DNA from: Rhodosorus marinus CCMP1338
Taxonomy: Eukaryota; Plantae; Rhodophyta
Length of the DNA stretch: 64,000 bases
Direction: 5' to 3'
Assembly (NCBI GenBank): GCA_029953675.1
Contig: JAMWBK010000006.1
Span: 1,116,001-1,180,000, forward strand
The position numbers and the translations under genes are program-made. The notes below the pieces were generated by a model. It saw only the letters and a program-made list of their open reading frames with translations. It was not told the origin of the DNA and did no database searches. This document shows, in pieces, positions 9,128 through 32,300 of the stretch. How positions within the stretch are numbered: the stretch's first letter is position 1; each line of letters starts with the position of its first letter.

Positions 9128-11692
9128 ATGAGAGTAGCGATAGTGGGTGGGAACTTGACAGGATGTGCAACAGCCTGGTTATTGGAGAAGTCGTACACGG
9201 ATCTTCGAAAAGAGTATGAACTGCAGGCTAGGTATCAGGAAGATGACAGTGATGTACTACCTCCACCGCCTGAGCACTTCAAGGTAGGGATTTATTGGAG
9301 AAGATCCTCTGTTGGGGGATCACAGGCTGGCTAACCACAACGTTGTGCTCCATGCTATGGCTCTGTTTTGCGTCTAGGTGACGATATTTGAGAAACGTCC
9401 AGTTTTAGGTGGGAATAAGATGCAAACGGAAGTAATTGAGGATGTCGCGGTTGAGGTATGCAGGCTAGAAGCAAGACGTTGCAGATGCAATACGACGAAA
9501 GCGGAATTCAGAGTGTTAAAGAACTACGGGTATCTTTGTGTTTCTTGTTTCTTTTCCGCATTGCGTGTATGCTTAGGCTGGTAGACACTCTACACTTCAT
9601 TCTGATGGTGTATACGTTGGGGAGGTCCTGGATCAAATGAGCTCCGAGATTGAGCTGGATCGGTTCTGGCTTGAAGGAACCGGCTACCATAGCGTTCGGA
9701 GTTTTGCGATCTACGACGCGGACAATTCTCAATATGCGTTCCGCCATGCTGGATACTGGGGTCTCGATATTCTGAAGGTCGTCGCAAGTTCAAGTAGGTT
9801 TTTGGATGATTAGATGTCGACTCGAATGCTTTTTGCAAGAAACTGAGAGGCCAGCTTCTCCTCCGATGTTCCTTCAGTTTTCACTCGGTTGCTTCTGCTT
9901 GTGGGTTGTGGATTCGCGCTGTACCACGGACGATTCGAAATGAGTGGACTTGCTCGGTTGAAAACGATTGCCGCAGCCCTCCTCATATTCTTCAGCTTGG
10001 TGCTTTTCCCTCAGCGTTTCCTATCGAGGGTAAACCGCTCATTTGCATTTTGGTCATCCGCTATCGTTGGTTTGATGACCTATGGGACTACTGCCGCTCT
10101 ATCTAGAGGAGCGTCAAAGGTGACATTAGAACCGCATTAGCCCAGTGCACCCCTGCAATGTGGTTTGCACTCAGTACAGTATCTTTGCTCATTCTGGGGG
10201 AGTAGGGTTTTACAGACCACTTCAAGGCAATGCTCAAGGCCAACGCCACGACAAAGAGCATCACACTGGGGCATTTATTCAATCGCTGTGGATTGGGGTC
10301 GTACTGCTCAACTGATGCCGAATCAGCTTTCCGGAGCTTCAAGTTTTTGCCTGCGTTTGTAAAGCACTACTCTGATACGCAACTTCAAGTGGACAATGCG
10401 AACTCGCAACTTGCAGCAAAAGATGTTTCAACTCTTGCGGCGATGCTGTGTCAACAGAGAGCGGACGTTAGCGAAGGGGACAAAGTGCTGAGGATAAGAG
10501 GTGAATAGGCTATTCGCTGACCTAAGGAGGGACGTTCGTAGGTGGCTTACAGACGGACTTTTTGTGTTGATGGCCATGTTTTGTCAGGCGGGAACGCCAA
10601 ACTATGCGAAGCTCTCGGGCGTGGGTCTCGACAGATGCTGAACGCAGAAGTGGTCAAGATCAAGAAGAGTAGTACGGAGGAGATCAAATCTGGCAAGCCG
10701 GTGTACACTCTTAGCTACAAAATTCCAGCTCAAACGGAACCTGTGGAGGAGGAATTTAATGGAATCGTCCTCGCCTGCTCGCCCAACATGGAGGAGCTCA
10801 CCTTTGAAACTCCTGGGATTGATAGCAGTGGCGACGTTTTCGGATACACCAAGGAGATCCTCACCACGCAGACTCTGGGAAATCGAAGCAGGTAAGCGAT
10901 CGCCATTGACCGTTACTCCTGACCCGCGGGTCACTGACAAAGATTGTGGTCACTTTTTGCTAATGTGGATATTCCTGTTGACCTGGCAGGTGGTTGGCGC
11001 TCGTTGGAGGTACATTAAATCACCGCTACCTCGGTCACTTGATTGCAGATACCGTCCCAGATATGATTCTTTCTACTTCCGGCAAAGACTGGCTGAAGGT
11101 ACTGTGTGCTTGCCTCCCTGGGAGCACCGTCACACTCACTTCCGACGCGTAGGGCATACTCTGGACTTCGTCTTACGAAGCGAAATCCTACTTCGTTCCT
11201 CTTTTGCAGATTGAATGTGTTGCAGAATCCAAAAAGGGCAAGATCTGGTCCGTAATATGTACAGAAGAACCGAAGGCAGGCAAAGGATTAATTGCTGAAC
11301 TCTTCACGGACGTTAGAGAGATGAAAGTCAGGGAACGCAGTCAGCCGAGGTATAAGCCTCGGGAGTTCATCAACGGTGTTGACGGAAACGATGTCCCCAG
11401 TTTAATTCTGGGCACTCGGTAAGTGTTTCACTCAGAGGGAGAGAGGTTGACCTCCAAATCAAAAAGAGCGAGAACATAACGCTTCTGGCCCGATGCCCGA
11501 TTGTTTCCGTCATACAGGTTTATCAACGCCGCTGGGATGGACCGGCTTTCCTGTGATCCCGAGACTGACATAATTTCCGCCTGGAACGCAGCAAGCCTAT
11601 TTTCTGTCGGGGTCAATTGGATGGAAGAGAGGGAAGAAGAGGGAGAGGAGGAGGAATTCTATAATGCTCCTGTGGACGAGCTCACCAGCTAG
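9128..11692 (+). CDS. Prenylcysteine oxidase / farnesylcysteine lyase-like flavoprotein, multi-exon
   Basis: Rossmann FAD motif MRVAIVGGNLTGCATAWLL followed by VTIFEKRPVLGG. Downstream segments LLNAEVVKIKK...YTLSY...EEEFNGIVLAC resemble the Prenylcys_lyase domain. Several GT-AG introns; TAG at 11690-11692. Not all internal exon boundaries were resolved. Confidence 0.65.
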
Positions 11693-12039: not shown

Positions 12040-15000
12040 CTACACAAGCTCGCAGTTGTCGACATAGGCAGAGCTACCACCCCGTGTCTGGAAGAAGACT
12101 CCGTATGGATTGACACTGTTCGAGGTTGTGAATTCCAGGCTCACTTGCCTCCAACCACGGGATGCAAGTGACTTGCTCACAAGCACTCTTTTCCGCTGCC
12201 CATGCACACGCGAGTCGACACCGATTCTGAGCTCACCGGCCGTTGTTCGCACAAAGCATGTCAAGGTGTAGTTGCGATTCGCTCTCAGTACAATGACCTG
12301 AACTGCAAACCCTCCCCTGCTAGTCAAATCCATACTATAGCCATCCTTATCCTGAGATATATATTTCTCGAACTGCGCCCCGCCGAAAGTGCTCCAACCA
12401 CGCTCTCCATTGCTAAAGGATGGGTTGCGGAGGAACTGTCCGTCGCTGAGGGCGGTAGCAGGAGTCACGTCTGGCAAATTGGAGCTGGAGCGCTGCCTCT
12501 TCGGTCTTAAGCTATCCGTTCGTAGTGAGCAATAATCCGCGTACCCGGACACACCCGCCGCTGCCTTAATCAACAAATCGAATTCCCCGCTCACCTTAGG
12601 AGTAAACCTTAGGATTTTCTCGCCCCACGTCCTATTAAGCTCTTCATTAGGAGGATCATCGTTCCTGGCAACAACGGCTCCGTTTCTCGTGATCATGAGC
12701 AGAACAGTACTCATCTTCGTTACTGCGCACGCGAACCTGTACGTTCTGCCCTTTACCAGTTCAACAGTCTGAACAGCGGTGGACTTGTCGTTTTCTAGGT
12801 GCAATCCAATCTTTCCGCTGTACGCAACGTTTTCGAAGTTGGCTCCTGCGGAAAGATCCCAAGCCCTGCTCTCCTTCTCAAAGTCCCCATCAATCATACC
12901 GTCTCCGGAGCTACCACCGGGCTTCGGCGTCGGTGTTGGTTTGGGCGTCGGCCTGGGCGTCGGTTTCTTGGTTGGCTTGGGCGTCGGCTTGGGCGTCGGT
13001 TTCTTGGTCGGCTTGGGCGTCGGCTTGGGCGTCGGTTTCTTGGTCGGCTTGGGCGTCGGCTTGGGCGTCGGTTTCTTGGTCGGCTTGGGCGTCGGCTTGG
13101 GCGTCGGTTTCTTGGTCGGCTTGGGCGTCGGCTTGGGCGTCGGCTTCTTGGTTGGCTTGGGCGTCGGCTTCGGCGTTGGCTTCTTGGTTGGCTTGGGCGT
13201 TGGCTTCGGCGTTGGCTTCTTGGTTGGCTTGGGCGTCGGCTTAGGCGTTGGCTTCTTTGTCGGCTTGGGCGTCGGCTTCGGCTTGCCTGTGGCCTCGGGA
13301 GGATTGCCGGAACTGAAGAATGATTTCCCATCACTCGTCCACCCAGAGGGAGCCCTTGGTCGCGGTGTCACACGAGGTGCCCCAGAGGGCCTCGATGTCG
13401 AGGTCCTGTACAGCGAGCAATCGTCGATTGCTGCGCGACCATCAGCTGCGAGCAGTCTGAGAAAATAGTTGCCGTTCCTTGGGACGTCGAAGTCCATCTG
13501 CTTCTCCCCAAAGTACTTGTTTCCAGCGTAGTGAGCAAGAGCATAATTCTTCGCGAAGGGAACAGGCGTCCTTTCTCCAAATACCAAAAACCGCACCATA
13601 TCTCCAACGACATCGCACGTAAGCCTGTAAGTTTTTCCTCTCTCCAGCTTCACCGCTTGTTGTACAAAGCCGCCTTGACGAAGATAGGCCGCTCTGCCTT
13701 TCTTTGCGTACTTGCTCTGGTAATACGCGCCTCCAGCCATGAGCCAACTTCCCCTTGCTTCGAAGTCGCCGTGTCGCAGGATCTCTTTACCCACTGGGTA
13801 TTGCTCCTTATCCGGAAGTGGTTGAGGTCGATTCCCGCCAGAGAACAAGGTTGCGCAGAAGTCCGGCTTTTCCCCGGTCACACCATCCACGCCGCCCATG
13901 AAGCAGCAGGCCTGTCCAGAACACTGATCAACCTGCATTGTAACAGTGCTGATCGTGCCTCCCCCATAACCGTCAGTATATTTGACGCCAATGGTCGGGT
14001 TCCTTCCCAGCAGATCCAAATCTACAGCGACAATAAAGACTCCAAACCAGAGGAAATGGTAAGTTCTCGGTCCTCCAGCAACGTCCGGATTGTAGAAGAC
14101 TGGAACACCGTTCACAGTGATCTTCGGGAAGTCCCCCCTCTGCCATCCTCGGGAGTGCGCAATTCGGATGAATCCCATCCCTTTGCCCGTCGGAATGTTG
14201 CGGAATCTAAAGAACTGCTCCTCGTCCTCAATCGGTACGAGCACTTTGCTGTTGTAGTGCCTGGATCGCTTGATCACGCTGCCGCTTGTCTGAGAGACTT
14301 TCTTCGCGAACGTCAGCTCGTAGGTAACCATCTCATCATGTCTGATGCTAATAGTATCCGGGGCTCTGGCAGGACCTCTGCTGGAAGCCTGTGAAACGAC
14401 CCTGTCTTCGTACATGATCTTGCCTCCTCTGTCCAGAGAGAGATTCTTATCTGCTCTTGTTAGAGCCCTGTCCGCGAGCCAAAGTCTCTTCCTCTTCACG
14501 GTTTGCAACGGAGCCGGTAGGTTCTTCGGAAACTTGAAGTCGACCTCGACAGTCGCATTCCTGAGGTTCTGCATGATCATCCAAGCCTTGTCTCCATCCA
14601 GGAACGCGTGGACATAAACGTCCGGGTGCGACGAGTACGAATATGCAAAATCTCCATCAACTCCCTGGAGCATTTGGAAATACCTAACGAGGTTCGTCAT
14701 CTTGTATTGCCCGTTATTCTGTTTCACAACCATGGACCATGGATACTTGGGTTCTCCCTTTCTGGTCCTCTGTGCTGGGTCGACCGTGATGAATGAGACA
14801 GCTTTCAGCATCTTATCAGGGATCCTCAAAAGACCATGCAACACCTTCATCGCTTCAGCCATAATCTTGAAGTCCTGACCGTCAGTCGCCGGTTGCGCCT
14901 TCTCCTTCTCCTTGTCGTACCATCCGATTGTGTACGATCCCATTTCAGATACAACGTAGTCATAGACCTTTCCTCTCTCCTTCTTCGTATAGCTCTCGAT

Positions 15001-15840
15001 GAGATCGATATTTCCCTCAGCGACAGCGCCTCCTACATCGTATAAATGCTCGGAAATGAAGTCCTGGCACCCATCCATATTGTCCATCCAGATCTGCATC
15101 CTTCTCCGGAAGTAGTCGAACTTCTGGAAATACGGTCGGGTAAAAGCCGCTGCAGGTCCGCCAACCTTTATTTCTGGGTGCATTTTCTTCACAGCCTTGC
15201 AAATTTTGTTGCATTTGGAGGCAAACCTTCTAATCATCTCCTTCTCCGATTGGTTTCCAGGGCGGATCCTGCTCCATTTCACCATCGGCTCGTTCATACA
15301 CTCGTAAATGCGTGGTCTGAAGAAGCCCCTGCTGTCATCGAAGAAGTACTTGAAGTACTGACCAAGGTACCAATAGTCCTGCGCCCTCTCCCGATTGATA
15401 AAAGCCTTCATCTTGTTCGCGGGATCAGATAGAATTCGATCCGCAGGAATGTATTTCCTTGTGACTTCAGTGCATCCGGTGCAGAAGCGTGGCCTCATGA
15501 TCTTCTCGCCCTCGGCCTTCATTGCGCTGACAGAGATCTTGTCCTTCTTCCATAGGTCAGAGCCAGAGAATGGCCCATCACCAGTAGTTCTCGCGAACGT
15601 GATGCCTAGAGTGTCCGCAAAGTATCGCATGGTCTTCTTGGGTAACTTCCCCTCGCTGTACCTCCCCTGAGCGACAACGAAGTCATCTCTCTTGAACTTC
15701 TTGACTCCCCCTGTGTTGAGGTTCGTTTGGAAGTCACATGTTATAGTCGTCCTCTTGGTACGCAATCCATCCACCTCGTTGAGAGTGATCGTCAACAGTG
15801 ACAGAATCACCATCAACGCAGAAACCTTGTACATCGCCAT
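12040..15840 (-). CDS. Secreted GH86 beta-porphyranase/beta-agarase-like glycoside hydrolase with three CBM4/9-like modules and a Pro-Thr-Lys linker (1266 aa, intronless)
   Basis: Signal peptide [28 protein letters not shown] clan acid/base motif [10 protein letters not shown], then GGPAAA, HLYD and the nucleophile motif VVSEMG. The beta-sandwich ending [13 protein letters not shown]...[16 protein letters not shown] resembles the beta-porphyranase A C-terminal domain. Three repeats start with a GDFE/NPSF-type motif ([38 protein letters not shown]). Confidence 0.9.
12921..13285 (-). repeat. 36-bp coding tandem repeat, ~9.5 units, encoding ([12 protein letters not shown])n
   Basis: The plus strand reads (cggcttgggcgtcggcttgggcgtcggtttcttggt)n. 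There are nine KK-containing units; the central ones are identical and the flanking ones carry mostly synonymous changes. Confidence 0.95.
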
Positions 15841-18800
15841 ATCTAATCTCCCGTTATTAGCAAGAGTAAGTTATTTTCCTCAAAATCTAGCCCCCCGAGA
15901 GCGTTCCAGAAAGTACACTACTGTCTCTCCTATTGTACAAGCCCAGCCATTTCTCCGTCCGTCCTGTCTACCAACCTCGCACTGTCCGATTTTCTGATTC
16001 TCGTTTCGAAGAACCTTCCCTGACTGGACGAACGTGCGGCACAACTTACGCACATCTTCTACTCTGCCTGCCGAGCCGACCTTCTGCGAACTTTACCAGG
16101 GTGACTAATCCTTCTTATATGAAATCCAACTCACAACTGTCTAAGCTAAAACTCTGGTGCAAATTCTCTTGTCAAGAGCTTGTGACCTTCCACAAGGAGC
16201 TAGTCCAGAAAAATCCAGAAAATAATACAGAAAACGAGCGAGGCACCGCAGATTTTTTTGCTTGAACGAGGTCGAGTTTTGTTTTTGCTTTTTTTTCGCT
16301 TGAGAGGGACAAGACAAAATTAAAAATTCTGTCGGTGATCGACACAAAGAGCAAATGTGCCGGGCTTTCGATACCATCCAAAAGCTTACCAATCCACAGA
16401 AAAGGGGGGAGAGAGCGGGAACCAAAAAAAGGAAGAAATTGATGAAACCCGAAGCGCAACATGATCCGGAAAGGGGCCTCGCGACGGCTTTCATAATTTC
16501 CCCGGGGCCTCCGTTGAAAACAAATTATAGCATGAATTATTGTTCCGGCGAAAAGAACAAGCCAGGAAAAAGAGAGAGGAAGTGCGACACCCAAGGTTGA
16601 ACAGACACCCACCAAACAAAAAACCCCTTCCCCTCCCTCTTCTTCCCACTATTCCGTAATTATTTCTTCCTCAATTCATACAAAAGACGAAAAATTGTCC
16701 TCAAGTCCCGTCCCCATGATGCTCGAAACAGAAATTCGAACACACATCCATTCCCACCCACCCAAATGCTTCTGTACCGATGAAATCTAAGGGAAATCAA
16801 ATGCCAATCGCGTCCCATCCATTTGCTACTCAAGTCCCATTTTTCATAAACAATTTCTTATCTCAATTCATGTTTTTCAATTTTTGCTTAGGAGCTTGAG
16901 TTTGCCACCCCAAGAATGTTGACCCTCTCCTTTCCTTAATTATACTACAAATATTACTTGCTTCATTCCCATCGGATATGATTGGTCGTTTGCAAAAGCC
17001 GTTCAGTATTGGAACCAAGTTGAGAATTGAAGTCCTTATATATAATCTTTATAATGGTAAGAAAATACACTGTTCGGACCACCGAGCCACTTTTGTCTAT
17101 CCCCAAGATTTACAAGGTTTCGAGGCAGGGGGGTATCGACCCGTGATTTGCTTCCGAGCTTTGGGAAGGCGAATTTCAAAATAGGGGTTGGATATATTGC
17201 CCCGCTGATCTAGCTTTCTTCGATTTTTTGGTGAAATATGGGATTTCTAGGTTTACAGGTCACCCATGGACATTGTCCTTGTAGGGGGGGGAGAGGGTTG
17301 AGCACCAACGGAAATTGGATGGACCCATGCCAGGGTGAAATTCAAGTTCGGAAATTCGTTTTCGGGATGAAGCACTGTTCCGTGTTTGAGACATTTTAGA
17401 TCCTTGTAGAGAATTTATTTCGATAATACAGAATATATCTAGGAGGATTGCTCAAAACGGGGGAGCCGGGGCTAGAAGTTTTCTGGAATTTCTTCATTCC
17501 AAGAGTGACTCGTCTTTATTCTGAACAAGAATTTAAATCTAGCTCAAAATGGTCTGCTTTAAGGATTAATGTTGGAAGTTTTAGAACTTTCTCAAGCCTA
17601 AAACGGTGCACAAATATGTGAAATCTTACGTTCCATGTTCCCAAGGACCCTTTTTGAAACCTACACGCTCATGGAAGTATCCAACCGCAATCTTCAGCAA
17701 TGGACTCAGGAAACAGTGTATTGTGAAAGCAATATAAGCGATATATCATCTCTTATTCATTATTTCTGAAAGAAAAGCGTCTTCCGGCCTAGACCCGGAG
17801 GGGTCCTGGTATCTCCATGCAGTTGTGCCAACAATACCAGACACCTTGAATTTTTGAAGAACTCATGATCGCCGACGAGCATCAGGGCAACCCGAGCAAC
17901 TCTTTTACGCAAAAATAGTGTAATGTATTCCAATCTACTCCTATCTTTTGGTAATATTTACTATTTACATGGCTAAAACCGACCAATTTCCTTTGGAGTC
18001 TCTGTAAAGTTCAGAAAGGAACCTAAAATGGAGGAGCCTCCGAGATTGGGGCATGGGATGGGTAATGTGTGCAAACACAAGCATGGAAAAATTGATCATG
18101 CAAAAACGAAAAAGGGGGGAATGCGAGAAGGGTTGTTGTGGGTGCCATCTGCCATCTTTGGTACTTCAACAAGGATTATCTCTATATTCTGAAGCGTTGG
18201 GCGAATTTTGCTTGGAAGTGGTAATGCTTGACAAACCGGATCGAATAGGATTCCGTTTGCTGTTTTTGAAAGGTCGGAAACTGTACATCGTTCCTCGCAA
18301 TAGATACACATTCACTCCTCTCACATGTTTCTGCGGTCCGGTTGGACAATAAACTGCAAAGGTCAAGGTTCCGTGTTCGCCGCGGGTTTTTTCCATTCTA
18401 AGGACTATTTTAGACCGTTTTTGGTCTTAATCATCACAGACGTTGCCGATGTTGATTGGCTGATTCTTCAAACTAATGGATTAATATGAGTTATGAGCTG
18501 TACTCTCCTTGGAAATAGACCCAAAGTGAGCTAAAATGACTTCATTTTTGCCTTAGCTTCTTTTTTTGGGGTGGGACATGGAATCGGGTGTGCGGGGATT
18601 GAGTCGCCTGCCAAGTGTGTATATATAAACGGACCCGATTCAATTCCACAAGAGGATTAGAATTTTTCACTTTTAATCGATTCTGTCGCTTCATAAAGGA
18701 ATGGACACGGCGGTTCGACACAGTGGATAAAAATTATATGATTTTGAGGACTGTGGCTTGAAGGGTTTTTGACCATAGGAAGGGTAGGATTTTAAAAAAA

Positions 18801-21800
18801 GGGTGTGTGGGTGGACAAACTAATTAATTCACCTGGATCACGGTAGGAGTCTGAATACGTGGAGCTATCTCCGGGTCAAAGGGGCTCAGAGGAATTGCAC
18901 GGGAACGAGGGGGGACACATCTCTCCCGGTCCAAGCTTCGTGAACCTGTCTCTTTCCCACGAACCTTGTTTCTGTTGGAAACCTACCGAACAGGCATAGG
19001 CGAAGTTTGTTTCTCGATCCTTGAGTACTGGTGTCCTTATGACTGACCACTTTACAGTTCTGTTGCGAGTCGTTTTGCGTTGAGGACTCTCCGGCTCCAG
19101 CGGCCTTTTTCTCTGGCTCGACTGAGCGCATCCTGTCTTTAATCCGAGTCACGCTCTGTGGGGCCGTCCTTCGCCCGGGGAATATTTCGAATCGAGGTCA
19201 CGACGAACGCATTATGCCATGGACCTTTCTTCGTACTATCGATCGCATCATCCGAGCATGTTCATCGTGGATGGACTGAGTTTAGACGACCTCAGCGGTG
19301 TGCTCCGCCTGATTCGGATACCGGCTAGTGTAGGTAGATAGCTATTATAGCGCACAGCTGTAAAAGTAGGTCGAGGACCACTTCCACCAAGCATGCCTAC
19401 GTTGGAACCATATCCGTGTGGGGACAAGGGTATCGTCGATTCGTAGGCTTTGGTTGCCTATTGTTGGGAACTTGGCCATGTTCTTCTCGGTTTGTGTGTC
19501 TCTGTATTCCCCCGTTTGAACTCGAAAATGAGTGCTTGCCGGTATGGCAAGTTATAACCGGTGATGACCCAAAATGCCATTTTTTTCTTCCACCTATTCG
19601 AAGTACAAGTATCCATCCAGTCGTACCAACTTTATCCGTCCGTACTCACCGTGTCAATCAAAATCCATTTAACGTTAAACCGCAAACACTAACTTTGGTC
19701 ATTGGCAACTAACTTCCCAGTGCGCTCTTCCCGCATCTAGGGAGTGTATCAGGCGCTTCCACGCTCGATCCATTAGACTGGCTCCCCTGCTCGCTGGTCC
19801 CATGGCGAGGAACCGCTTGTGGCAGCAAGTTCCCCTTACCTCGCCGGCAAAGTCAAGAATTGAGCGTTTAAGACCCTTTTCAAATCAAAAAAAAGCTAAG
19901 GAAGTCCCCCAATCGGGATAAATAGGAAAGATAACACTCAAAACACCGAGCTTGGTGACAGAAGATTCTTCTGCTTCAAAAAAAAAGAGCCCGGATCGCT
20001 CAAGTCATAATTAAGGCGGTCCTACGGAGAACCAAGTTGGCGGTCGATCCCGTCGTTTTCTTCCAAACTAAACATATTAGGGGTTTCAAGTATGGACTCT
20101 TTTCTGGAAGGGGTAGGTCTTGGATCGACTCTCACCGTAGAGTTTGGGACGGATCTTCACCTTGTACACAGTTTTGGGAAGCGTCTCATAAAATTCTTGC
20201 GGGTTCTTGATACTCGGAAAACGTTTGTGAGATGGTTTGGAAGTGTGTCATCTGCGAGTCCCCAGGGGGGGGGCTTGAGGCAATTCTGTAAATGAATAGC
20301 ACCTCTTGGGTCCAAATAGGGAGACTTTTCATCCACGGGAACCCTTGGTTTTTTGCGTTTCACAACCTTTTTTTAGATCGGTTTATGCTTCAGAGGGGGG
20401 CAGGGGAGAGCCCGCCAATAGCTCTTTTTTGTCTCCCCATTGCATCGTGGTTTGTCTGCTTTTTGTTCCGTCCTTGGAGCATATAGACTAGCGTTTCCAA
20501 AGTTCAGTTCTCAGTTCATGCATATGCGAGTTTGTCTCTGGAAGTGGCGTTTGCCGCGCAATTGGAGAAATTTACCTGAAAGAAGAAGTCCAAATCGGGG
20601 AATGTGCAGTAGTTTTTGTCGTTCGTGTTCAACATCATATGGAAAAGATGGATGCCTGGGTTTTCCAAGCAGATCATATTCCGTTCTTCTCCCGTGCTTC
20701 CCCCCGGTGGCCAAGCTTTCAAGCAGAGTTTCCGCTTTGGGTTCATGTTGCTTGATTCTGTCCCACTAGTCAAGGGACGCGTTGAGAGGAAGGTGATACT
20801 CTTTACACATCGGCGTGTCTGCCATGACCCGTCCAGGCCATCCCTCCGACACAATCATCGCGCTTATGACGTCGCGAGTATCAGCAACGAACGATCCGTT
20901 TATGATCTCAGAGTATCTTCATGCCTTGGACGAGACACGGGTTTAGACCATCGAAGAGCATGGAGGAGAAATATCGCGGTACAAGCGATATTTCGCCCGC
21001 CGAAAGCTTTTGGGCCTGGCAGCTATGCACTTGCAGCACAGAGGGAGAGCTTGTTGTTGTTGGGGGGAGCTCGAAGCCGGATCAATCGGCAACTTTCACC
21101 ATCCGTGGGGAGGATGTTCAGCTGAGGTTCATCCTAAGCGGAAGCAGGGCTGCTGGTTTCCTTAAACGCAGTTACAACGGCCTCAAGTCGTTCACAGTAT
21201 CGGTCCATGCACGGCTAAACGACCGAATGAGCTTGACCACCTCAACCCGACCGGATTTTTCTTGACTGAACCATAGTCAATATAGATTGAATAACATAAA
21301 CCCAATCTCAAATCTAGACCCTGTGTCTCAAGCTAATTATAAAAAACAAAGGGAAAAATTGGTGCTCAATTTCAGCTAACTTACGTTAACTAAAATTGAA
21401 CAACATTTTTGTTTACGCAACAACTCAAAACATAGAAATTCGTCCTTTTCATTTGTCCTACAAAATAATCATGGCATTCTAGGGAAGCCACTTGCCACGC
21501 CGGACCATCTACAACAGTTTCATAATTTAGAAAGGAAATATAATGAATCCTGTTTACTTTTCAGATACTATTCCATAATAACAGGTACAATAACTTAAAT
21601 ATATCTAACTCTGTCAATTCAATCATTTTATAAGAAAGCTTCAGTTAGAATCCCTATATTTAGACCGCGCAAAACCGTGCTTCCCTATTCTTGAAATGAA
21701 CTTACGAATCTGGAATTTGCTGACACTGTCCTAGTGAATGGCATCGTTTTCGATGTATTTCTTCAGCAATATTGTTAGGAACAAGTGTTTTTTTATATCC

Positions 21801-22518
21801 CCTCTGAGTGGGCTGAGGTGGGAATTGAAATGGTTCAGCAATGGTTTGTACAATCGACGACAGCGACTTTCTGAAGTACCAGACTGGTAATTGTGGTGTT
21901 TCTGACATGGTCGTTGCTGTGAATTAGCATCAACATCAATGGACTGATTGTTATGGAAGACTTTGGTTACGCATTTGTCCAAGTAGAACCGGGCTGGTTC
22001 TTCCCGCCAACACATATTTCCTGTCAGTTCTTCCTGCTGAATTGAACTATGTGCGTCCCTTGTGGACGATGGGCCTTGCTGAGTTGAACGCTGCAAGAAT
22101 TGAAGGGGTAGGAATCCTAAAGAAAAAAGAGGTAGATGCTACGGAACTAAGCAAAACCAGTTGCAAATGAGGCTGGTTGATAGATCTAGCCTCCCAAACG
22201 CAGGGGCCAGTGGAGCATGAGGATGGTGCTGGACGTTCCTTCCCGGTGCTCCACGTTATAGCTCACTCACGTGCTGGTTTCTCATGCAGTTCTTGGAACC
22301 GACACAGAATTTGATGAATCGACTGGTTCTCTCCATTCCAGCACGCCTATGTCAAGTTAACTTGTTGACCCGCTCACGAGCTGGACGTCAAAGCACTAGA
22401 AGAGTAGGTGCTAAGCTTTCGAGGAGAAACGAGCAACGCGAAGGTGGAGTCGAGGGGTACGCTGCTTAGAGCGAAGAGTTTTGCTTGAGTTTATGGGCGC
22501 CGCGTGGATGTAAGAAAC

Positions 22519-25137
22519 ATGACTACCGTCCGACGGATTTTGATGTGTAGCCTGCTCTCTCTGCTCTGGTTTTACGTGGAAGCAGCGGTAGTAGATGTGG
22601 ACTTCAAGGCGGATCTATGCATGAACGACGACTGCTCTTTCGAGCGGGACAAGTTTGTGAACATGCACTACAACGTTTTCAACTCCGAGCTCGACGACGA
22701 GCAGCTTGCATTCTTGATGGATGAGCTAGATGTTGGAGTAGGTCGAAACCTCCAGGGTCCGCTCTCAACCACACCTGGTTTCTCTGCCAGACCTTCCTTC
22801 TCGGAGCTGAGGGACGCCGGGAGGCAGAAGATCGAGCGGCTGAAGCGGATGGAATCAAGAAGGATCTACGACACGAGATTTAAGATCGTAGGAGACAACT
22901 ACCGAGCTTTCGAGGAAGGCAGAAAGGATGTCAGGTCGTTTATTCGGCACGCCTCTTGGTTCTTTGAAACTCATTTTGATGATTCCCAGGGTGTCATGAT
23001 GCCGAGGTATTATGAAGTTGCCAATGAGGTTATGGTAAAGTGGAACATGTTTGGGAACAATGAGAGGGAGACTCTGCACGAGATCGCAGAGTTCATGGGG
23101 GGGGTGTGCTGCGGGATCAAGGAAACACTCGGGAAGCGGGTCATGTGCGGTGGCCCCGCAGCAGCATTTCCTCACTATCAGCGACGCGACTTCGAAATGT
23201 GGAAATTGCGTGTGCACGATTTTTACATGCGCGCAGGTCGCTGCATCGATTTCTGGTCGCAACACTTTTACGACCTAGACGGAGGCATCCTAGAGGCGAT
23301 CATGGATTCCGTCAACTCCTTCACGGTACACCATTACGGGAAGATCTATCCGCAGGTAGTTTCCGAGTTTGGCGCATTCTCAAAGGCCTGGTTCGACAAG
23401 GAAGGAAATGGTGCAGCTCCTCCAACCGCCTCCCGGGACTGGGCAATCATTCACAAAACAATAGGAATCATGATGCAGCTAATGAAGCGTCCAGACCAGA
23501 TCCTCAAGACAGTAGCATTCGTTACCGGGAAATCGAGCTGGACCAGTGGGGAGCACCCTTATCCATGGGCCATGCTTAAGCCGGCAAAGAACGGAAGCTA
23601 CCAATGGACACCGCTCCTGGACATCTTTAAGGCCTTCAAAGACGTCAAAGGAGAATACAGGAGGTCCCATACTGACGACTGCAACCTCGTCATCAACGCA
23701 ATTGCTGACGACACCCATGGCTACCTTCTGATCAAGAACTCCGTGAACCGCACTATCAACGTCAAGCTCAGGCACATAAACGGAGCTCCAAGATCAAAAA
23801 ACCTCTTGATGCGGAGGCTCTACCTCAATGAAGTCCCACTGAATCCATCAGATCGAGAACAGGAGCTTACTCGTTCTGGAACTCCCGTCTTCAAGACGAC
23901 GGTGGAGTCGCCAACCTTAGCAGCTATCTCCATGAAGCCAGAGGAGATGGTGGTTCTCATCTATGAGTTTGAGTCGCCGCCGAAGATCCAGAGGCGTGTC
24001 ACAGTAACTGAGCACTTCACGAGGCAAGCTGATCTGATGCCCTTCCGCGGCCGGGAAACGCTCCGATATCGCATAGCCAACGTCCCTAACGCCGAGGCAT
24101 CTGGCAGTGCTTGGTTGAAGCTTGGCATCTCCAGAAGAAACGGGCTGTCTTTCCAAGCAAACGTCGTCTTCAACGGCGAGAGCATTGCCTACGAAGCAAA
24201 GTCTGCTCCTTACTATGACGGAGAGTGGATGCCGTACTGGGCCATGGTCAAGGTGCCTATTCGTCGAGATCTGGTAGCGATTGAAAATCGTATAACGATC
24301 TCCTTTAACGATGATGAACCGGGATGGATATCTTCAGTGATCCTGGAGCTGGAGACCATTGAAGCCACCGATGGACCGGCGGAAGATGAGTCGAGTGAAC
24401 ATGTATCGTCGTCGGTGGGGACGAGAAATCTCGTGACCAACGGAGGATTTGAGCACGATCTGGCAAACTGGGAGCACGTCGGAAGGGTCTGGCTCGCGAA
24501 TGCTGACAGCAATGTTCGTTCCGGCGGATCTGCTGTTGCCTTGAGGGAACATGCTCGAATCGAGCAGCAATTCAATGTTAAGCCCGGGAAATCATACATT
24601 GCAACAGTCATGGGAAAGGCAGCTGAGGACGGAGCAAGGCTCGAGGTTGAACTTCAACTTCGGGGGGCGGCGGTTCGAAGGAGAGCGATTGAGAGCACCG
24701 TCTTCAGCGCCTCTAGGACTGTCTTTCCAGTGAAGGTCAACTCGACAACAGGAACAATCGTTCTCCGTGTACCCCAAGACGGCGTTGGGGGTTACTTCGA
24801 CGCCGTTAGAGTAGAGGAAGTCCTACCGATAGACACCCTAGAGCTAAGCTCCCCCGTGCCAACCAGTCTCTCACCTAGAGGCACGATCTCCGTAACCATC
24901 GACTACCACGTCAGGGCAACCCTTGACGTTGTTGTGTTCATCAGACGCGGTTCAAATTACATCGCTGGAGTCAGACGAACGGTGAACGCAGGGGCTTCAA
25001 CCATCACGCTCCCCATCAACCTGGGAAGAGTTACACTACGTCGAGGCATGTACGATCTAGTTGCTTGCCTCAGACAAGCTGGCGGAAACTATACATCTAA
25101 CGTCTTCAGACTTCAAGAGACTCTACCAGTGGTCTAA
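22519..25137 (+). CDS. Second secreted GH86 beta-porphyranase/agarase-like enzyme with one CBM4/9-like module and a C-terminal Ig-like beta-sandwich (872 aa from the ATG, intronless)
   Basis: First in-frame ATG at 22519 (the ORF track starts at a GTG at 22504). Signal peptide MTTVRRILMCSLLSLLWFYVEA. Catalytic motifs YYEVANEVMVK, GGPAAAFP, HFYD and VVSEFG. MKRPDQILKTVAF aligns with [13 protein letters not shown] of the first copy. CBM start NLVTNGGFEHDLANW. Confidence 0.9.
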   Translation: MTTVRRILMCSLLSLLWFYVEAAVVDVDFKADLCMNDDCSFERDKFVNMHYNVFNSELDDEQLAFLMDELDVGVGRNLQGPLSTTPGFSARPSFSELRDAGRQKIERLKRMESRRIYDTRFKIVGDNYRAFEEGRKDVRSFIRHASWFFETHFDDSQGVMMPRYYEVANEVMVKWNMFGNNERETLHEIAEFMGGVCCGIKETLGKRVMCGGPAAAFPHYQRRDFEMWKLRVHDFYMRAGRCIDFWSQHFYDLDGGILEAIMDSVNSFTVHHYGKIYPQVVSEFGAFSKAWFDKEGNGAAPPTASRDWAIIHKTIGIMMQLMKRPDQILKTVAFVTGKSSWTSGEHPYPWAMLKPAKNGSYQWTPLLDIFKAFKDVKGEYRRSHTDDCNLVINAIADDTHGYLLIKNSVNRTINVKLRHINGAPRSKNLLMRRLYLNEVPLNPSDREQELTRSGTPVFKTTVESPTLAAISMKPEEMVVLIYEFESPPKIQRRVTVTEHFTRQADLMPFRGRETLRYRIANVPNAEASGSAWLKLGISRRNGLSFQANVVFNGESIAYEAKSAPYYDGEWMPYWAMVKVPIRRDLVAIENRITISFNDDEPGWISSVILELETIEATDGPAEDESSEHVSSSVGTRNLVTNGGFEHDLANWEHVGRVWLANADSNVRSGGSAVALREHARIEQQFNVKPGKSYIATVMGKAAEDGARLEVELQLRGAAVRRRAIESTVFSASRTVFPVKVNSTTGTIVLRVPQDGVGGYFDAVRVEEVLPIDTLELSSPVPTSLSPRGTISVTIDYHVRATLDVVVFIRRGSNYIAGVRRTVNAGASTITLPINLGRVTLRRGMYDLVACLRQAGGNYTSNVFRLQETLPVV

Positions 25138-25800
25138 TGAGCACGGGTTACTTGCCCGCAGTTCATCGTCGTTTGCTCTCTGCCCTAGTCTTCTCTCTTC
25201 TTCTTCCTTGTACAAAATAAAACGTGTTCCGTAGAGCAGACGTTGAAGAAGAAACACAAACACAAACGGCCAGAACATGAGACACATCCGCGAGTCCTCG
25301 GGGATTACAACAATGTCCGCAGCGGGAGTGACCACGTATACAAGCGTTCCCCCCCTCAGCGAGAAAATCAAACCGCGTCGCGATTGAAAACGTAGCGATC
25401 TACTGAGGACGACGAAAACCAAAGTGCGGCAGTTAGACGCAGCCTTCAGCCCGCACCACAAAGAGGACCGCTGAGCAGGATGGGCGCTTCATCACCACAA
25501 CTGAGAGAAATCGATCCGTCTTGCCATTGACAATTAAGTGATCTACTGACAATGACGAGAACGAAAGGCTGCGGTGGGATGGCCTCCAGTCCCTAAACCA
25601 AAGGTGCATCTGCATGGAGCAGGATCAACGCATAGAAGTTTTTCACTCAATCTTTGCCCTCCCGCCGCGAATCGATCCGTGCCGCGATAATGGTTTAAGA
25701 AGTGGAAAGTGATAAATTGTTTCGAGGGTTTTTTCCTGAGGAGATGATTTTCAAGGATTTGGCGGAGGTCCTCTTCTGGATGACGGACTCCTCTTGACAA
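25123..25800 (-). CDS. Possible small spliced membrane-protein gene (hypothetical)
   Basis: ATG at 25800 opens MSRGVRHPEEDLRQILENHLLRKK. A branch/polypyrimidine acceptor (ctaactgcc...gtcgtcctcag) precedes a last exon with a hydrophobic stretch (MCLMFWPFVFVFLLQ) and a charged tail. Internal splicing is unresolved. Confidence 0.3.
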
Positions 25801-25899
25801 TTTCGTAGGCCCGTCAGGATTCGTCAGGATGCGTCACTGAGGTTTTTCTTTCTTTCGTTATATAGAGTTGTGCATATCGAATTGGAGTCAGATGAAGTG

Positions 25900-27910
25900 A
25901 TGGCTGGACAAGCCCACTCCAGGCGTGGAGAGAAAAAGTCACGGCTTTCTTTTCCGAAATTCGTACGTCAGTCTCTTCTGCTTCGTATAACCGGAGTCAT
26001 CTTGGCCCTACTGGTTGTTGGGTCGTGGTTTGGCAACGGCAATCGCGAGACCTGGCCGGCGGAGCTTGATAACCTTGAGAACGTCAAACTCAGGGTCAGT
26101 GAGGACGGCACGTATCCGACGGTTGCGCATCTCATTCAGGATATTGTTCCGGGCGAGAAAGGACTGTTAGGTACCCCATATCATTCCCGAAATGCTCCTT
26201 ACTCCGCAAAAAGGTGGCATACTGTTTCCTGAACAAGTTTTCCACCCCCGGCGGGCTTCACATGGGTATAGATGATGAGAACCAGATCATAACCGCGAAG
26301 AACATCGCGCATGGCCTCAAAATATGGGTAGCGCCGATCAACAACCAGACGCTTATGTGCCTCAAGAGTCCATCAGGGTGCGGCAACAACCACGCCGCGT
26401 GGGATAAACGCGTATACCTTTTCCTCCTGGAGTTGATGGCCGACGTGAAGCCTGAAGAAGCGGATTTCGTGTTCATTCCGAACTTTCATTTCTGTTTCCG
26501 CAACAATCGAGGGTAAAGACAGATACAGATCACAACCTCCTTAGTCCGATGATGACTTTGCAAGGAATCTAACGAGCGTGATGCCTTTGGTCATTCGATC
26601 CCTTTATATGAAGGTGCTACGGAACCATCGGAAGGAGACCGGCGGACGAAGCAGATTCACTGTATTTAATATACAAAGAAACTCTGGAGACTTTAGAACG
26701 CCTAGCGCCTGGAAGGGACTGGACGAATCGCTTTGTCGTTCCTATGAGTCATGAACGCGGGGGATGCGGAAAATTCGACGACAGTTACGAACACGGTTCA
26801 CGTGAGCGAAAAATCCGCGTTTTGAATGCCGTTTGATGGTCATTCTCAAGCCCGTTAATATCGTAACCCCTCCTGACGCTAATTTCGTCATTGTAGAACG
26901 TCACCCGGTGCTGAAGGACCAGATTGCGATTAGTACCTTCGGAAATGTCGATGGCAACTGCTATCTGCCACAACTGGACGTTGTGATTCCTCCATTTATG
27001 GACTACGAAGCAGTGAAATGGGCTGAAAAGCCTCCCGCCAGCGAGCATAGGGAGTACCTAGTAAGTTGTTGCCTCATTTCTTCCTAGTTCCGACTCGTTT
27101 TATCTCTCCATATTCTCGCCACCAGATTTTTTCTTGGTCGTCGTCGTCGATGCGGGATTCGTTCCGACAGGCTGTGCCTTGATTACTGCTGGTTCACTCA
27201 GCCTTCGGCCCAAGCTAGCCGGTTGACAGAAGCTGCTCTCCCTGCTGCTTATGAAGCACTTACGCTGGTTTGTGTCCTTTTACTTGTAGTTAATCAACTT
27301 GTCAACCCAGTCGAGTGGCCACGTCGACAAGGTAGTGAACCTCATGGACAGATTCGCTCAGCAAGGCTGCCCTGGACATCCGGATAAGTGTATCTTCAAG
27401 CCGATCGGAGACCTAAATTCGCAGGAGTACGTCGATTATCTACGTAAGAGTCGTTTCTGTCTGTTGGCAGGTGGACGTAACGGATTTAGTTACCGCATCT
27501 GGGCAGCACTATTCACTGGTATGCTATGTGAAGCAGCCGAACAAGACCTGTTCTGCATCTTGAGGACATTTGCGACGTGTGGAGTTGGTACTGACAGCTG
27601 AAAACATGTTTCTTCTCCGTCAGGTTGTATTCCTGTGCTTTTGATGGATGATGGTCAACTGCCTTTTCAAGATTTCTTGGACTATCGGAAGTTTGCAATT
27701 ACCCTGAACACCAGAGGAGTGTTTATCGACAACCTCGACCTCGAAGCACTCTTGACAAGCATCGACCGGATCGGCGCCAAAGCGCTTCAGGTCAACGGCG
27801 GGAGGGTCAGGCGGAGCTTTGACTATCGCGCCCCGTTCGCAAGAGCCATGGGACCCTACGGCCTCCTTCTGGAGACCCTGAAGAAAAGGAAGCAGCAGCT
27901 AGGTTTCTAA
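25900..27910 (+). CDS. GT47 exostosin-family glycosyltransferase, type II Golgi membrane protein, multi-exon
   Basis: Basic N-tail plus one TM segment (LLLRITGVILALLVVGSWF). GT47 motifs PEEADFVFIP, LDVVIPP and YVDYLRKSRFCLLAGG...SYRIWAALFTG/CIPVLLMDDGQLPFQDFLDY. TAA at 27908-27910. Confidence 0.88.
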
Positions 27911-29358: not shown

Positions 29359-32300
29359 ATGGCTGCTGGAGAATCACTCGTTAGGAGTGATGCGATCAGT
29401 AGGATTCGCGTGAAACGCCCTCTTCTCCACCGCGCATTGGACGCGGGGAAGATCGATGTGGGGGTGAAGGTCTCCGTTGAGATTGCGGCAGAGCTGAAGT
29501 ATGGCTGCCTGCATACGCTCTTTTTTTCTTATACCAAGGAAGCAAGGGCTCAAAAAGTTGCCCCCCTCACGGATGATAGCATACTAAGCAAAACGCGCTT
29601 CGGGTGGTTTGTTCCGTGTTTCATAGTGCTCCGAAGCTGCAAGTTTTGTCACCAAAGGACTACTACGAAGTCTACCTGGCAGTATCTGAGGAGCTTCAGA
29701 TTTTTGGTAACGTCGTCGTTGCATCTGCAAGAGCTGGAGGAACTTCAGTTGTCGATCTTTATGAAAAGGTGAGAAGATCTACCCGCAGATTCGACAATAG
29801 ATACCCTCCGATAGAGGCCCCTTCCGAGTCCTCTCTAGTTCATTACACCCCGAAAACGGCTTGTGCACTTCTGGCCATGATATAGAGGGTTTTGAAGAAA
29901 GCGTCTTTGTAGGAAAGCCACCATGACTGATCTGTCAAGAGTATGGATTTGCAACTTACTTGCGATGATTCCGGAGAGGCTTAGACACCCCATCGTTTCC
30001 ATAGTTGCCGCAGTTGCCACCTTGCAGATGGCGTTTGTGAGTTTCCCAACCCTGAAACCTCTTGTGTTCACATGGATTTCTAGGTTCAGTACACTGAACA
30101 TGTTACTCCAAGACTCTATCTGCTGATTACGATTGGAAGTGCACTGGTGACGACCAAGCAGACCTTAGTTGAGGAGGTCATGTCGGATCTTCTTACCATG
30201 TGCTCTGCAGTTCAGAATCCAATACGGGGATTGTTTCTGAGGAACTACTACGCCCAGGTGTGTTGAGATCCCGCTTTCTTCCAGAGGACATGGTGGAGTG
30301 CTTTTTCTCGGCTCCTATCGAAAGGGACGAATCTGATCTGTGATCTCTACACGAGAGACGGATGTGGCACTGCTCAGTTTGTTCTCCCGCTCTTTCGAGA
30401 GAGAGAGAGGGAGAACTTCACTATGGGCTCTGTGCTCCTCTCGGGCCGACCGCGCATGAATTGTCGTGATGTGCGTACGCTGATCGACAGGATTGTCTTG
30501 TTTTCTTTTCATCTTGAAAAGTGCATGAAGGACAAGCTACCCGATGGAGAAAGGTCGAGGGAGCAGCTTGAGAGGACGATCGGATTTGTTCTGGAGAATT
30601 TTACAGCGATGAACCGACTTTGGGTGAGACTTCAGTACGATTGTCCTCCAGAAATGAACAAGTTGAGGACAAAACAGAGAAGGGAGCTGAGTCTTCTCGT
30701 AGGGTCAAGCATCATGACGATCTCGAAGCTGCGGGGAGTCGATTTGAGCTTGTACAAGACGGTAATCGCTGTGATAGAGATCTGTAGTGGATCTTTAGGA
30801 AGTTTCTCAATAGATGCTCTTTCTTTCGCACTGACTCCTTTTCTCGCGCACGTGTTCCCTAGCTCATTCTTCCGCAGCTATTGGATCAGATCGTTAGCTG
30901 CAAAGAATCGCTAGCTCAAGAATACCTCATGGAGTGCATCGTTCAGGTATCGATTCAAGTTACATATCTTCTGACGGGGGTTTCCGTGCGCGGCGTAGGT
31001 GTCGTTCTCATCAATATTCCGGCTGAATAGGTGTTTCCGGACGAGCACCACATCGGGACTTTGGAGGAGTTGCTGACAGCGTTTTCCAAGTTCGAGAAAG
31101 GCGTAGACCTCAGGCTTGTCATCGCTGCACTGACAGATCGTTTGTCGCGATTTGCATCGAACTCCCCAGAGAACTGCGAGGCAGTGAGAAACGCAAGGAC
31201 TTTCGACGTCTTCGCAGCTTACCTTCCGGAGGTCGTCAAGAAGTTTGCTCCCTTCATCCAGAGAACGGAATTGTTGAGAGCATATGCGTCACTCCTGAGA
31301 CTTGTTCTCGCGGTAAGTTGTTTCGTCAGGTCCGAGCGACAACCGCAGTCCACCTTTGCCGTCTCTGGAGCAGGCAGATGATGTCTCCTCAGGTTTTGAA
31401 GTTAATCTTGCTGCCTCACAATCGTATCACAGGCGTATCCGGATCGAATGGACTTTGTTGATCAAGTCCTGTGCTTCTGCGTCACTACTCTTCAAGCCAC
31501 CGAAGGCTCATCAATTACTACTGGAGCAGAAGACATGTAAGGGGGGCAGAGAACAAAGCCCAAGCGTGACACTCTAGCTGCGGTTGCTTAGACTTTTGTG
31601 ACTAGAGCTGTGCTTTCAAGAAGCTGAATTGTCCCTTCATGTTTTCCAACACCTGACCAGGATCACCACTATTACCTCAGACGAGTTCTTCGAAGGCGTA
31701 CGCCTGTGCAAAACCGATGCGATCCCTCGACTGCTCAGCCCGTTTGAACATGCTTTGGCTATGTTTACTTTGCGTTTAGGACGATGGTGAGATTGCTGAA
31801 AATGCGAGCGCGTCCACTACAGCGAAGGCTCCAGGCAGCGGGGGCGACGCCTCGAGTGAGGCTGTTCAAGAGCTCGCAGAGTGCTCTGCAGAAGAAAACG
31901 TTCTCGTGCAGGTGATCAGCATGGTTTTTGAGGCGCACAAGGACATCTCGGACCGCCTCAAGCTCCGCCATTTCATGGCTTTTATTCGCGTCCTTTCGTC
32001 TCCAACGCGGCGGAAAGTGGCTGCCATGTTGCTAGAGTCGATTTCTGAATACAAGTACGTCCGGCACGAGCGCGCAAATTTATTCAACCGGCTTTAGGGT
32101 ACACGTGTGGTGAACTGGTTCCTACATGCAAATCTTGGCTGACTCTGTCGTGAAATCTTGACTTACGAACCCTTTGCAGGCAATGTATCCAAGATGAAAC
32201 AACGCTTGAAAAGCTTTTCGTGTATGTTGATCCACTCATTTCAGATGGATCCATACGAAAGAAGCAGCCACTCGTCCATCCATTGCTGGAAAAATTGGTC

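Follow-up and report, generated by a model that had tools for sequence, protein, structure and literature searches.

Intact GH86 galactanase genes of putative bacterial ancestry beside a GT47 gene in the red alga Rhodosorus marinus

Agar, porphyran and carrageenan come from red algae. To our knowledge, next to nothing is known about the enzymes with which the alga itself builds or remodels these galactans, and biochemical work is limited to GH16 enzymes of seaweeds. The closest described case is that of Chondrus crispus, whose GH16 genes were explained by transfer from marine bacteria and subsequent duplication; for one of the gene products, the beta-porphyranase CcGH16-3, the matrix of the alga itself was proposed as target (PMC9771727). 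A second point of reference is the family GH86, of which all characterised members are catabolic bacterial agarases or porphyranases and which cleaves agar-type galactans. Here, we analysed a 64-kb stretch of DNA from Rhodosorus marinus CCMP1338 (positions 1,116,001 to 1,180,000 of contig JAMWBK010000006.1, assembly GCA_029953675.1), hereafter called the window, in which two divergently oriented GH86 genes, GH86-A and GH86-B, are found next to a gene for a GT47 glycosyltransferase.

The original prediction had described these genes as a physically linked module for synthesis and hydrolysis of an extracellular galactan, a eukaryotic counterpart of the polysaccharide utilisation loci (PULs) of bacteria. 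Its gene inventory was borne out, as positions 12040-27910 contain exactly three public gene calls, namely GH86-A (minus strand), GH86-B and GT47 (both plus strand), with a 6.7-kb spacer between the two GH86 genes. The enzyme identities, the secretory-type N-termini of all three products, the eukaryotic setting and a galactan as plausible substrate stood up as well, while the physically linked, PUL-like unit did not. The reading that we favour, and which we regard as somewhat more likely than not, is that of horizontally acquired, secreted GH86 galactanases acting on the alga's own coat, with GT47 as a neighbour whose functional link to them is doubtful. The main interest of the locus thus lies in the red-algal GH86 family rather than in the proposed module.

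The GH86 proteins and their red-algal relatives

Both GH86 assignments are carried by Pfam profiles, by matches to known structures and by the catalytic residues. GH86-A scores above the Pfam cut-offs with BPA_C (40.8 bits, residues 544-637), Porphyrn_cat_1 (33.1 bits, residues 407-463) and CBM_4_9 (35.2 bits). It matches the GH86 entries 5ta1, 4aw7 and 8h97 of the Protein Data Bank (PDB) with E-values from 6.5e-22 to 2e-20, and the alignments to 4aw7 and 8h97 span residues 158-642. BPA_C was likewise found in GH86-B (39.5 bits), whereas Porphyrn_cat_1 is above its cut-off in GH86-A only; the PDB matches of GH86-B are 8h97 (E 1.7e-34), 5ta1 (5e-33) and 4aw7 (3e-23). Its reading frame begins with the annotated ATG at 22519, position 22504 of the original prediction being an upstream in-frame GTG. 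An AlphaFold2 model of GH86-B (mean pLDDT 82.4), for which an 11-sequence alignment served as input, is consistent with the GH86 fold, in which two Ig-like beta-sandwich domains come after a (beta/alpha)8 barrel. When this model was compared to known structures with Foldseek, the seven best matches came from GH86 without exception, with a TM on target of 0.82-0.86 and E-values as low as 2e-43, and the next family, GH30, appeared only at E 4e-13, a large gap below GH86.

Alignments place the acid/base of GH86-B at E170 and its nucleophile at E283, with which the NEP and SE motifs of GH86-A line up. All of 142 aligned homologues have the glutamate of E283, and at least 90% of them have that of E170. 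The nucleophile of the bacterial enzyme BuGH86 is E322, as known from an E322Q mutant (PMC5849685); that this residue is the glutamate of the ISEY motif, with which E283 aligns, was taken from the clan GH-A pattern and from conservation, since residue numbers in the paper and in the PDB chain do not correspond neatly. Judged by alignment, the catalytic glutamate pair is intact in both proteins. Sequence and catalytic residues of both are those of CAZy family GH86, in the case of GH86-B joined by the fold, and both are intact members of this family. They would be secreted, retaining endo-beta-galactanases of the agarase or porphyranase type. In both GH86 proteins as well as in the GT47 product, hydrophobicity peaks at the N-terminus, with residues 7-20 of GH86-A and GH86-B resembling a signal peptide; these N-termini were judged by inspection and a hydropathy scan, not by a trained predictor.

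C-terminally, both enzymes are extended by modules resembling carbohydrate-binding modules (CBMs), three plus a Pro/Thr-rich linker in GH86-A, one plus an agarase-associated domain in GH86-B. Module 1 of GH86-A shows 31% identity with module 2 (E 2e-11) and 27% with module 3 (E 7e-6); module 3 itself reaches 35.2 bits with CBM_4_9 over residues 1137-1244 (cut-off 25.9) and matches PDB chain 8xmz_A (E 6e-5). In GH86-B, residues 652-768 are all-beta in the model, with a DUF642 match below cut-off (22.1 bits versus 27) and weak similarity to module 1 of GH86-A. Its C-terminal domain matches 8wae_A (E 4.5e-8), whose 118 residues were deposited under the name 'Beta-agarase', and the precomputed Pfam family PF27624 (Porph_assoc). 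On the sequence level, the algal GH86 proteins therefore also carry the accessory domains that accompany bacterial agarases and porphyranases. The linker of GH86-A is encoded by a tandem repeat of 36 nt in 9.5 copies (12941-13282, 96% matches in Tandem Repeats Finder), which translates into repeated 12-residue units. Counterpart isoforms of GH86-A in the transcriptome MMETSP0011 measure 1202, 1226 and 1250 amino acids; since they differ by steps of 24 residues, i.e. two repeat units, they suggest either a polymorphism in repeat length or a collapsed assembly.

To place the two proteins in their family, we searched 1.84 billion representative proteins exhaustively and without a profile, which gave 444 relatives at E <= 0.001. 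A word-indexed homologue search with GH86-B alone had yielded two non-self matches, and the same kind of search with the 11-sequence GH86 alignment added nothing new, probably since low-complexity words swamped the candidates. The best non-self matches are a protein of Bangiopsis sp. CCMP1999, which also belongs to the Stylonematophyceae, several R. marinus transcriptome proteins and the R. marinus genome protein NDN08_000651, joined by four distinct paralogues from the sequencing runs SRR22824290 and SRR22824282. In a FastTree phylogeny of 142 sequences, these matches and both window proteins form a single clade of 14 rows with a support of 100. An IQ-TREE analysis of 53 sequences (LG+C20 PMSF) likewise kept all 13 red sequences together on the same side of a branch with an SH-aLRT of 100, a separation equalled by none of 500 label shuffles; five of these 13 (P0005-P0008 and P0028) are labelled red solely by their position in the tree. 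The remaining 128 rows of the larger tree fall into bacterial-type clades. Look-ups for five of these rows led to Marinoscillum and Saccharicrinis (Bacteroidota), Lentimonas and Haloferula (Verrucomicrobiota) and one choanoflagellate transcriptome. The latter sequence (P0003, from the EukProt entry of Stephanoeca diplocostata) is a complete GH86 open reading frame (ORF) of 669 amino acids, which lies inside a bacterial-type clade and outside the red one; it may stem from bacterial prey, contamination or a separate transfer.

The red clade shares just 25-35% identity with any bacterial sequence, and it is diverse in itself. R. marinus holds at least six GH86 lineages, namely GH86-A/P0011, NDN08_000651, P0010, P0155, P0032 and GH86-B. 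GH86-A has its nearest paralogue in NDN08_000651, while GH86-B forms a separate deep branch with the Bangiopsis protein as closest relative (34% identity). As GH86-A and GH86-B are only 25% identical to each other, they are, by sequence, ancient paralogues. A recent tandem duplication as origin of the pair was rejected, since GH86-A is closest to a copy 200 kb away and GH86-B belongs to a deep lineage of its own. That third copy, NDN08_000651, brings the number of GH86 genes within 215 kb of this contig to three. Transcript-derived counterparts were found for GH86-A (P0011, 91-92% identity) and for four other GH86 paralogues; for NDN08_000651, the genome is the sole source. In the runs SRR22824290 and SRR22824282 (L002, L003, L006, L007 and L008), red-clade GH86 sequences are present on transcript-sized contigs and without introns, and the four paralogues found there indicate that the GH86 expansion extends beyond Rhodosorus and Bangiopsis. 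A literature search on GH86 and related enzyme names returned no paper on a eukaryotic GH86 enzyme, and the names of the Rhodosorus GH86 proteins in UniProt are automatic only.

GH86-A and GH86-B are the two longest uninterrupted ORFs of the window. Their G+C content at third codon positions (GC3) is 0.61-0.64, compared to 0.59 for GT47. Together with the single-exon third copy and the taxonomic distribution, uninterrupted ORFs of host-like GC3 fit an old transfer from bacteria to algae, followed by adjustment to the host composition and by duplication, the direction being read from distribution and absence of introns. Most likely, a marine bacterium was the source from which an ancestor of the Stylonematophyceae obtained the family, which multiplied thereafter.

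The GT47 gene and the surroundings of the locus

GT47 starts 763 bp after the stop codon of GH86-B on the same strand. Its exon structure (Table 1) was guided by P0157, a transcript-derived protein of another R. marinus strain, to which the product is 83% identical. The spliced product scores 86.8 bits with PF03016 (cut-off 33.4), whereas individual exons score weakly. In the PDB, human EXT1/EXT2 are its sole relatives, with a 65-residue match at E 1.7e-5. Residues 26-44 are the most hydrophobic 19-mer and follow a basic tail of 25 residues, which resembles a type II membrane anchor as far as hydropathy tells. From its sequence, the gene would encode a native Golgi-type glycosyltransferase. 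Once the gene is aligned to P0157, there is no need to regard it as frameshifted or as a pseudogene. Two other splice models were rejected, one with an exon 3/4 junction out of frame, the other with an implausible 32-nt intron. The public model NDN08_000605 (434 amino acids) omits 25 residues within exon 5, KSRFCLLAGGRNGFSYRIWAALFTG; they make up the conserved FCL..G..R motif region of GT47 and are present in P0157. The proline of the FCL.P.G motif is an alanine in this protein (FCLLAGG, versus FCLMPAG in the MMETSP counterpart); the MMETSP counterpart and an R. marinus paralogue have the proline, as does EXT1 where it aligns. For the GT47 paralogue P0158, an exact look-up in assemblies found no record.

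Table 1 Features of the locus, its neighbours and the third GH86 copy. Positions refer to the window unless a record is named; ORF, open reading frame; aa, amino acids.
Feature	Position	Strand	Details and basis
Ribosomal protein S4e	2040-2925		public gene calls
552-aa protein without known identity	5275-7577		public gene calls
Prenylcysteine-lyase-like gene	9128-11692		public gene calls
GH86-A gene	12040-15840	-	single uninterrupted ORF, no intron; 1266 aa; stop codon included
GH86-A CBM_4_9 module 3, residues 1115-1266	12043-12498	-	Pfam CBM_4_9 and PDB
GH86-A CBM-like module 2, residues 975-1115	12496-12918	-	26-31% identical to modules 1 and 3
GH86-A Pro/Thr/Lys-rich linker	12916-13350	-	translation and tandem repeat
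GH86-A CBM-like module 1, residues 655-830	13351-13878	-	similarity to modules 2 and 3
GH86-A residues 1-645: signal-peptide-like N-terminus, GH86 catalytic barrel, two beta-sandwich domains	13906-15840	-	PDB, Pfam and hydropathy
GH86-A inferred nucleophile E299	14944-14946	-	alignment to GH86-B E283
GH86-A inferred acid/base E184 (N183-E184)	15289-15291	-	alignment to GH86-B E170
Spacer between divergent GH86-A and GH86-B	15841-22518	none	no feature recognised
GH86-B gene	22519-25137	+	single ORF, no intron; 872 aa
GH86-B core, residues 1-615
GH86-B inferred acid/base E170 (N169-E170)	23026-23028	+	alignment
GH86-B inferred nucleophile E283	23365-23367	+	aligns with ISEY glutamate of BuGH86
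GH86-B disordered linker and CBM-like beta-sandwich, residues about 615-770	24361-24828	+	model and weak matches
GH86-B C-terminal domain, residues 772-863	24832-25107	+	PDB and precomputed Pfam
GT47 (exostosin-type) gene	25900-27910	+	six exons, five GT..AG introns; 459 aa
GT47 exons	25900-26170, 26272-26512, 26614-26801, 26897-27060, 27290-27518, 27624-27910	+	guided by transcript protein P0157
152-aa ORF	between GT47 and Vps35	-	public gene calls
Vps35	29359-33722		public gene calls
Third GH86 copy, NDN08_000651	record 1,341,497-1,344,013 of JAMWBK010000006.1		838 aa, single exon; 200 kb from the window locus
Region around NDN08_000651 (L005)	record 1,331,497-1,354,013 of JAMWBK010000006.1

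R. marinus CCMP1338 belongs to the class Stylonematophyceae and has a nuclear genome of 31.19 Mb with 8392 genes, 24,821 introns and 15% repeats (PMC10250338), from which totals of about three introns per gene and one gene per 3.7 kb follow. The contig, of 2,472,615 bp, is a chromosome-level part of this nuclear genome, and the GH86-B protein is on record exactly once, on this contig (record range about 1,128,519-1,151,137). Gene order is S4e, the 552-aa protein, the prenylcysteine-lyase-like gene, GH86-A (minus strand), the gap of 6.7 kb, GH86-B (plus), GT47 (plus), the 152-aa ORF (minus) and Vps35. Given the 2.47-Mb R. marinus contig and the flanking genes S4e, Vps35 and intron-bearing GT47, the DNA of the locus is eukaryotic nuclear DNA and not a bacterial contamination. 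Housekeeping genes without relation to these three fill the remainder of the window, and no additional carbohydrate-active enzyme was found among the larger ORFs elsewhere in it.

The spacer between the GH86 genes contains no called gene, all its ORFs are shorter than 170 amino acids and have no Pfam match above cut-off, and neither repeats nor a credible Rfam match were found in it. These gene calls and searches gave no sign of a hidden gene, transposon or RNA. Its G+C content (0.43-0.47) is lower than that of the genes (0.50-0.56). A gene-free stretch of 6.7 kb stands out against the genome mean of one gene per 3.7 kb; upstream of the third GH86 copy, a comparable stretch of about 3.7 kb is likewise devoid of genes (positions 6292-10000 of L005). 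The neighbours of that copy encode XPG, Cpn10, a HAD hydrolase, a zinc-finger protein, a cyclin and a large GSDH/Big_5/NPCBM protein. The last of these, with 1253 amino acids and about 9 kb from NDN08_000651, is possibly another secreted carbohydrate-binding protein. The 800 bp upstream of NDN08_000651 and of GH86-A have 90 8-mers in common, compared to a shuffle maximum of 74.

Two further observations concern the distal part of the window. A tRNA gene was found at 52300-52383 (plus strand; Rfam 53.7 bits), to which ARAGORN assigns no anticodon; its length of 84 nt may reflect an intron or a long variable arm. Two divergent ORFs (55212-55769, minus strand; 57057-57689, plus strand) have the motifs FGYGSNL..., RWGGAAADI... 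and GAIWSI in common and, judged by eye, resemble paralogous gamma-glutamylcyclotransferase/AIG2-like genes.

Substrate of the enzymes and significance of their neighbourhood

But, why should a phototrophic alga keep a whole family of galactanases? Under the reading that we favour, R. marinus would release the GH86 enzymes into its own bound, galactose-rich coat, to cleave there the beta-1,4 links in a galactan resembling agar or porphyran. Such cutting could serve wall loosening, turnover or the release of daughter cells, a role analogous to that proposed for the GH16 porphyranase of Chondrus. Members of the Stylonematophyceae make only bound exopolysaccharide, of which galactose accounts for the largest share in Bangiopsis (78%), Rhodaphanes (87%) and Chroothece (58%), three of the five species measured (PMC9031348); this renders a galactan plausible as GH86 substrate. 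The adjacency of GH86-A and GH86-B is probably a remnant of an old local inverted duplication that was kept in place. Such a duplication appears to be the simplest account, given a chance of about 0.4% for adjacency of two GH86 genes and the three copies within 215 kb. The adjacency of GT47 and GH86 may reflect their common part in matrix-polysaccharide biology.

Several points speak against this reading. (i) A review lists a sulfated polysaccharide with glucose, galactose, xylose and galacturonic acid for Rhodosorus, which need not be agar-like. (ii) The GH86 tree carries no root and does not place the red clade inside any named bacterial group, so the direction of transfer is inferred rather than shown. 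(iii) Hydropathy is the sole basis of the GH86 signal peptides. (iv) No transcript counterpart of GH86-B was found in a homologue search that readily recovers proteins of 80-90% identity, and GH86-B may therefore be silent or strain-specific. (v) The neighbourhood of GH86-B and GT47 is nominally unlikely to have arisen by chance (about 0.4%, given few GT47 genes), which leaves some probability for a functional link.

The last point leads to the question of what the GT47 gene does at this place. Its family has been proposed, without test, for elongation of red-algal sulfated galactans, and Chondrus has three GT47 genes; yet GT47 enzymes span many activities including transfer of galactose, glucuronic acid, xylose and arabinose, and GT7 is another family proposed as galactan synthase (PMC7359372). 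We give about even chances to a coincidental neighbourhood, in which the GH86 enzymes are functional and GT47 acts on an unrelated glycan such as xylan, a glucuronic acid/xylose side chain or protein O-glycans. The genome is compact with its 3.7 kb per gene, the rest of the window is occupied by unrelated housekeeping genes, the breadth of the GT47 family leaves room for such a glycan, and NDN08_000651 is a GH86 copy that does without a GT47 neighbour. What such a coincidence has to cope with is the low nominal chance of this pairing if GT47 genes are few, and the fact that both types of genes plausibly concern the extracellular matrix.

A co-regulated and selectively maintained cluster, as put forward in the original prediction, in which GT47 builds an extracellular sulfated galactan in the Golgi and the GH86 enzymes trim it outside the cell, we consider unlikely. 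It is true that the three genes are adjacent with none in between, that all of their products have secretory-type N-termini by hydropathy and that GT47 belongs to a family proposed for galactan elongation. With about six GH86 genes, about three GT47 genes and 8392 genes in total, chance adjacency can be estimated at ~2*6*3/8392 = 0.4% for a GH86-GT47 pair and at ~6*5/8392 = 0.4% for a GH86-GH86 pair. However, the adjacency was noticed post hoc, and with about 150 wall-related genes being eligible, the chance rises to about 20%. NDN08_000651, the sole other genomic copy located, has no GT47 gene within 10 kb according to gene calls and tblastn, so that the linkage does not recur at this copy. 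No 9-mer or 10-mer is common to the three upstream regions, and sharing of 8-mers among them is within the range of shuffled sequences. The histories of the genes differ too, the GH86 genes being intron-free and foreign-looking, GT47 native and interrupted by five introns, and GH86-A and GH86-B are old paralogues rather than a tailored pair. Transcriptomes contain counterparts of GT47 (P0157) and GH86-A (P0011) but none of GH86-B, and with GT7 there is an alternative candidate for galactan synthesis. Environmental contigs for a comparison of gene order were sought by metagenome scans with GT47 and GH86 profiles, which gave pattern matches and no true relatives. The Logan contigs from the above sequencing runs are of transcript size (3.6-5.6 kb), and no GT47 was found in the flanks of one of them, L002. 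Functional coupling of GT47 with the GH86 enzymes is accordingly doubtful in our view, and no more likely is the specific version in which GH86-B and GT47, maybe with GH86-A, form a conserved, co-expressed cluster that pairs a Golgi glycosyltransferase making the bound galactan of Stylonematophyceae with hydrolases of bacterial descent that tailor this same polymer. The locus should not be called a eukaryotic PUL.

A different substrate is conceivable as well: the GH86 enzymes might digest foreign agar or porphyran from seaweeds or detritus as a carbon source, or clear competing epiphytes. The catabolic function of all characterised GH86 enzymes and the several CBM-like modules, which are typical for binding of insoluble foreign substrates, would suit such a lifestyle. 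But R. marinus lives freely as a phototroph, genes for the subsequent catabolic steps (GH117, GH2, anhydrogalactose pathway) did not turn up in the window, related algae have their own galactose-rich bound polysaccharide, and the precedent of Chondrus GH16 favours self-remodelling, so that we hold digestion of foreign material to be improbable. That the GH86 genes are bacterial contamination or an assembly artefact, as their lack of introns and the bacterial-type relatives outside the red clade might suggest, is effectively refuted by the 2.47-Mb contig with eukaryotic neighbours and an intron-bearing gene 763 bp away, by the host-like GC3, by counterparts in independent R. marinus and Bangiopsis transcriptomes and by the low identity of the red clade to bacterial sequences.

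Significance and comparison with known systems

That red algae employ galactanases of bacterial type is already known; what is new here is the CAZy family, the algal class and the larger size of the gene family. If the GH86 galactanases do act on the alga's own coat, an expanded and expressed GH86 family in an early-branching class would suggest that galactanases of a bacterial family were recruited for algal walls a second time and independently. This reading predicts agar-like or porphyran-like linkages in the bound galactan of Stylonematophyceae, and R. marinus, a culturable unicell with a small genome, lends itself to such work. Should GT47 turn out to be functionally coupled, it would be a candidate for a galactan-related glycosyltransferase, which for now is a lead and not a finding. 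Should the cluster even prove to be conserved and co-expressed, it would be the first algal glycan cluster described that combines synthesis and remodelling, and would provide a genetic handle on the red-algal galactan synthase.

Among the described systems, the GH16 galactanases of Chondrus crispus (CcGH16-3; PMC9771727) are closest in biology. Like the GH86 genes analysed here, they are nuclear red-algal genes with marine-bacterial relatives, are explained by transfer and duplication, and have been assigned a putative part in remodelling the sulfated galactan matrix of the alga itself. They differ in CAZy family and fold, with a beta-jelly roll in GH16 compared to a (beta/alpha)8 barrel and two beta-sandwiches in GH86, and in their hosts, which are Florideophyceae/Bangiophyceae in the one case and unicellular or filamentous Stylonematophyceae in the other. 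Three genes in Chondrus contrast with at least six GH86 lineages in R. marinus, the latter being known from sequence only.

The closest molecular relatives are the bacterial enzymes BuGH86 (5TA1), BpGH86A (4AW7) and Aga86A_Wa (8H97). They match the algal proteins in fold (as modelled for GH86-B, TM 0.82-0.86), in the catalytic glutamate pair, in the three-domain core and in the added CBM-like modules and agarase-associated domain. In contrast to them, the R. marinus proteins, which are just 20-30% identical to these enzymes, are encoded on a eukaryotic chromosome and outside any catabolic locus with SusC/D, GH117 or GH2, and they have N-termini resembling eukaryotic signal peptides and a Pro/Thr linker.

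The GT47 product resembles the members of its family, among them MUR3, IRX10, ARAD1 and XGD1 of plants, EXT1/EXT2 of animals and the three Chondrus proteins, in an exostosin domain above the Pfam cut-off and an N-terminus of type II anchor character, and it has the conserved C-terminal motif region in common with EXT1. It is very distant from all characterised members and carries alanine where EXT1 has the motif proline. The PULs of Bacteroidota, finally, are likewise physical clusters of genes for carbohydrate-active enzymes that may act on one glycan. They are, however, co-transcribed catabolic operons with genes for transporters, binding proteins and sensors, whereas the three genes of the R. 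marinus locus are each transcribed on their own, with 6.7 kb between the two divergent ones, and would combine one biosynthetic with two hydrolytic functions.

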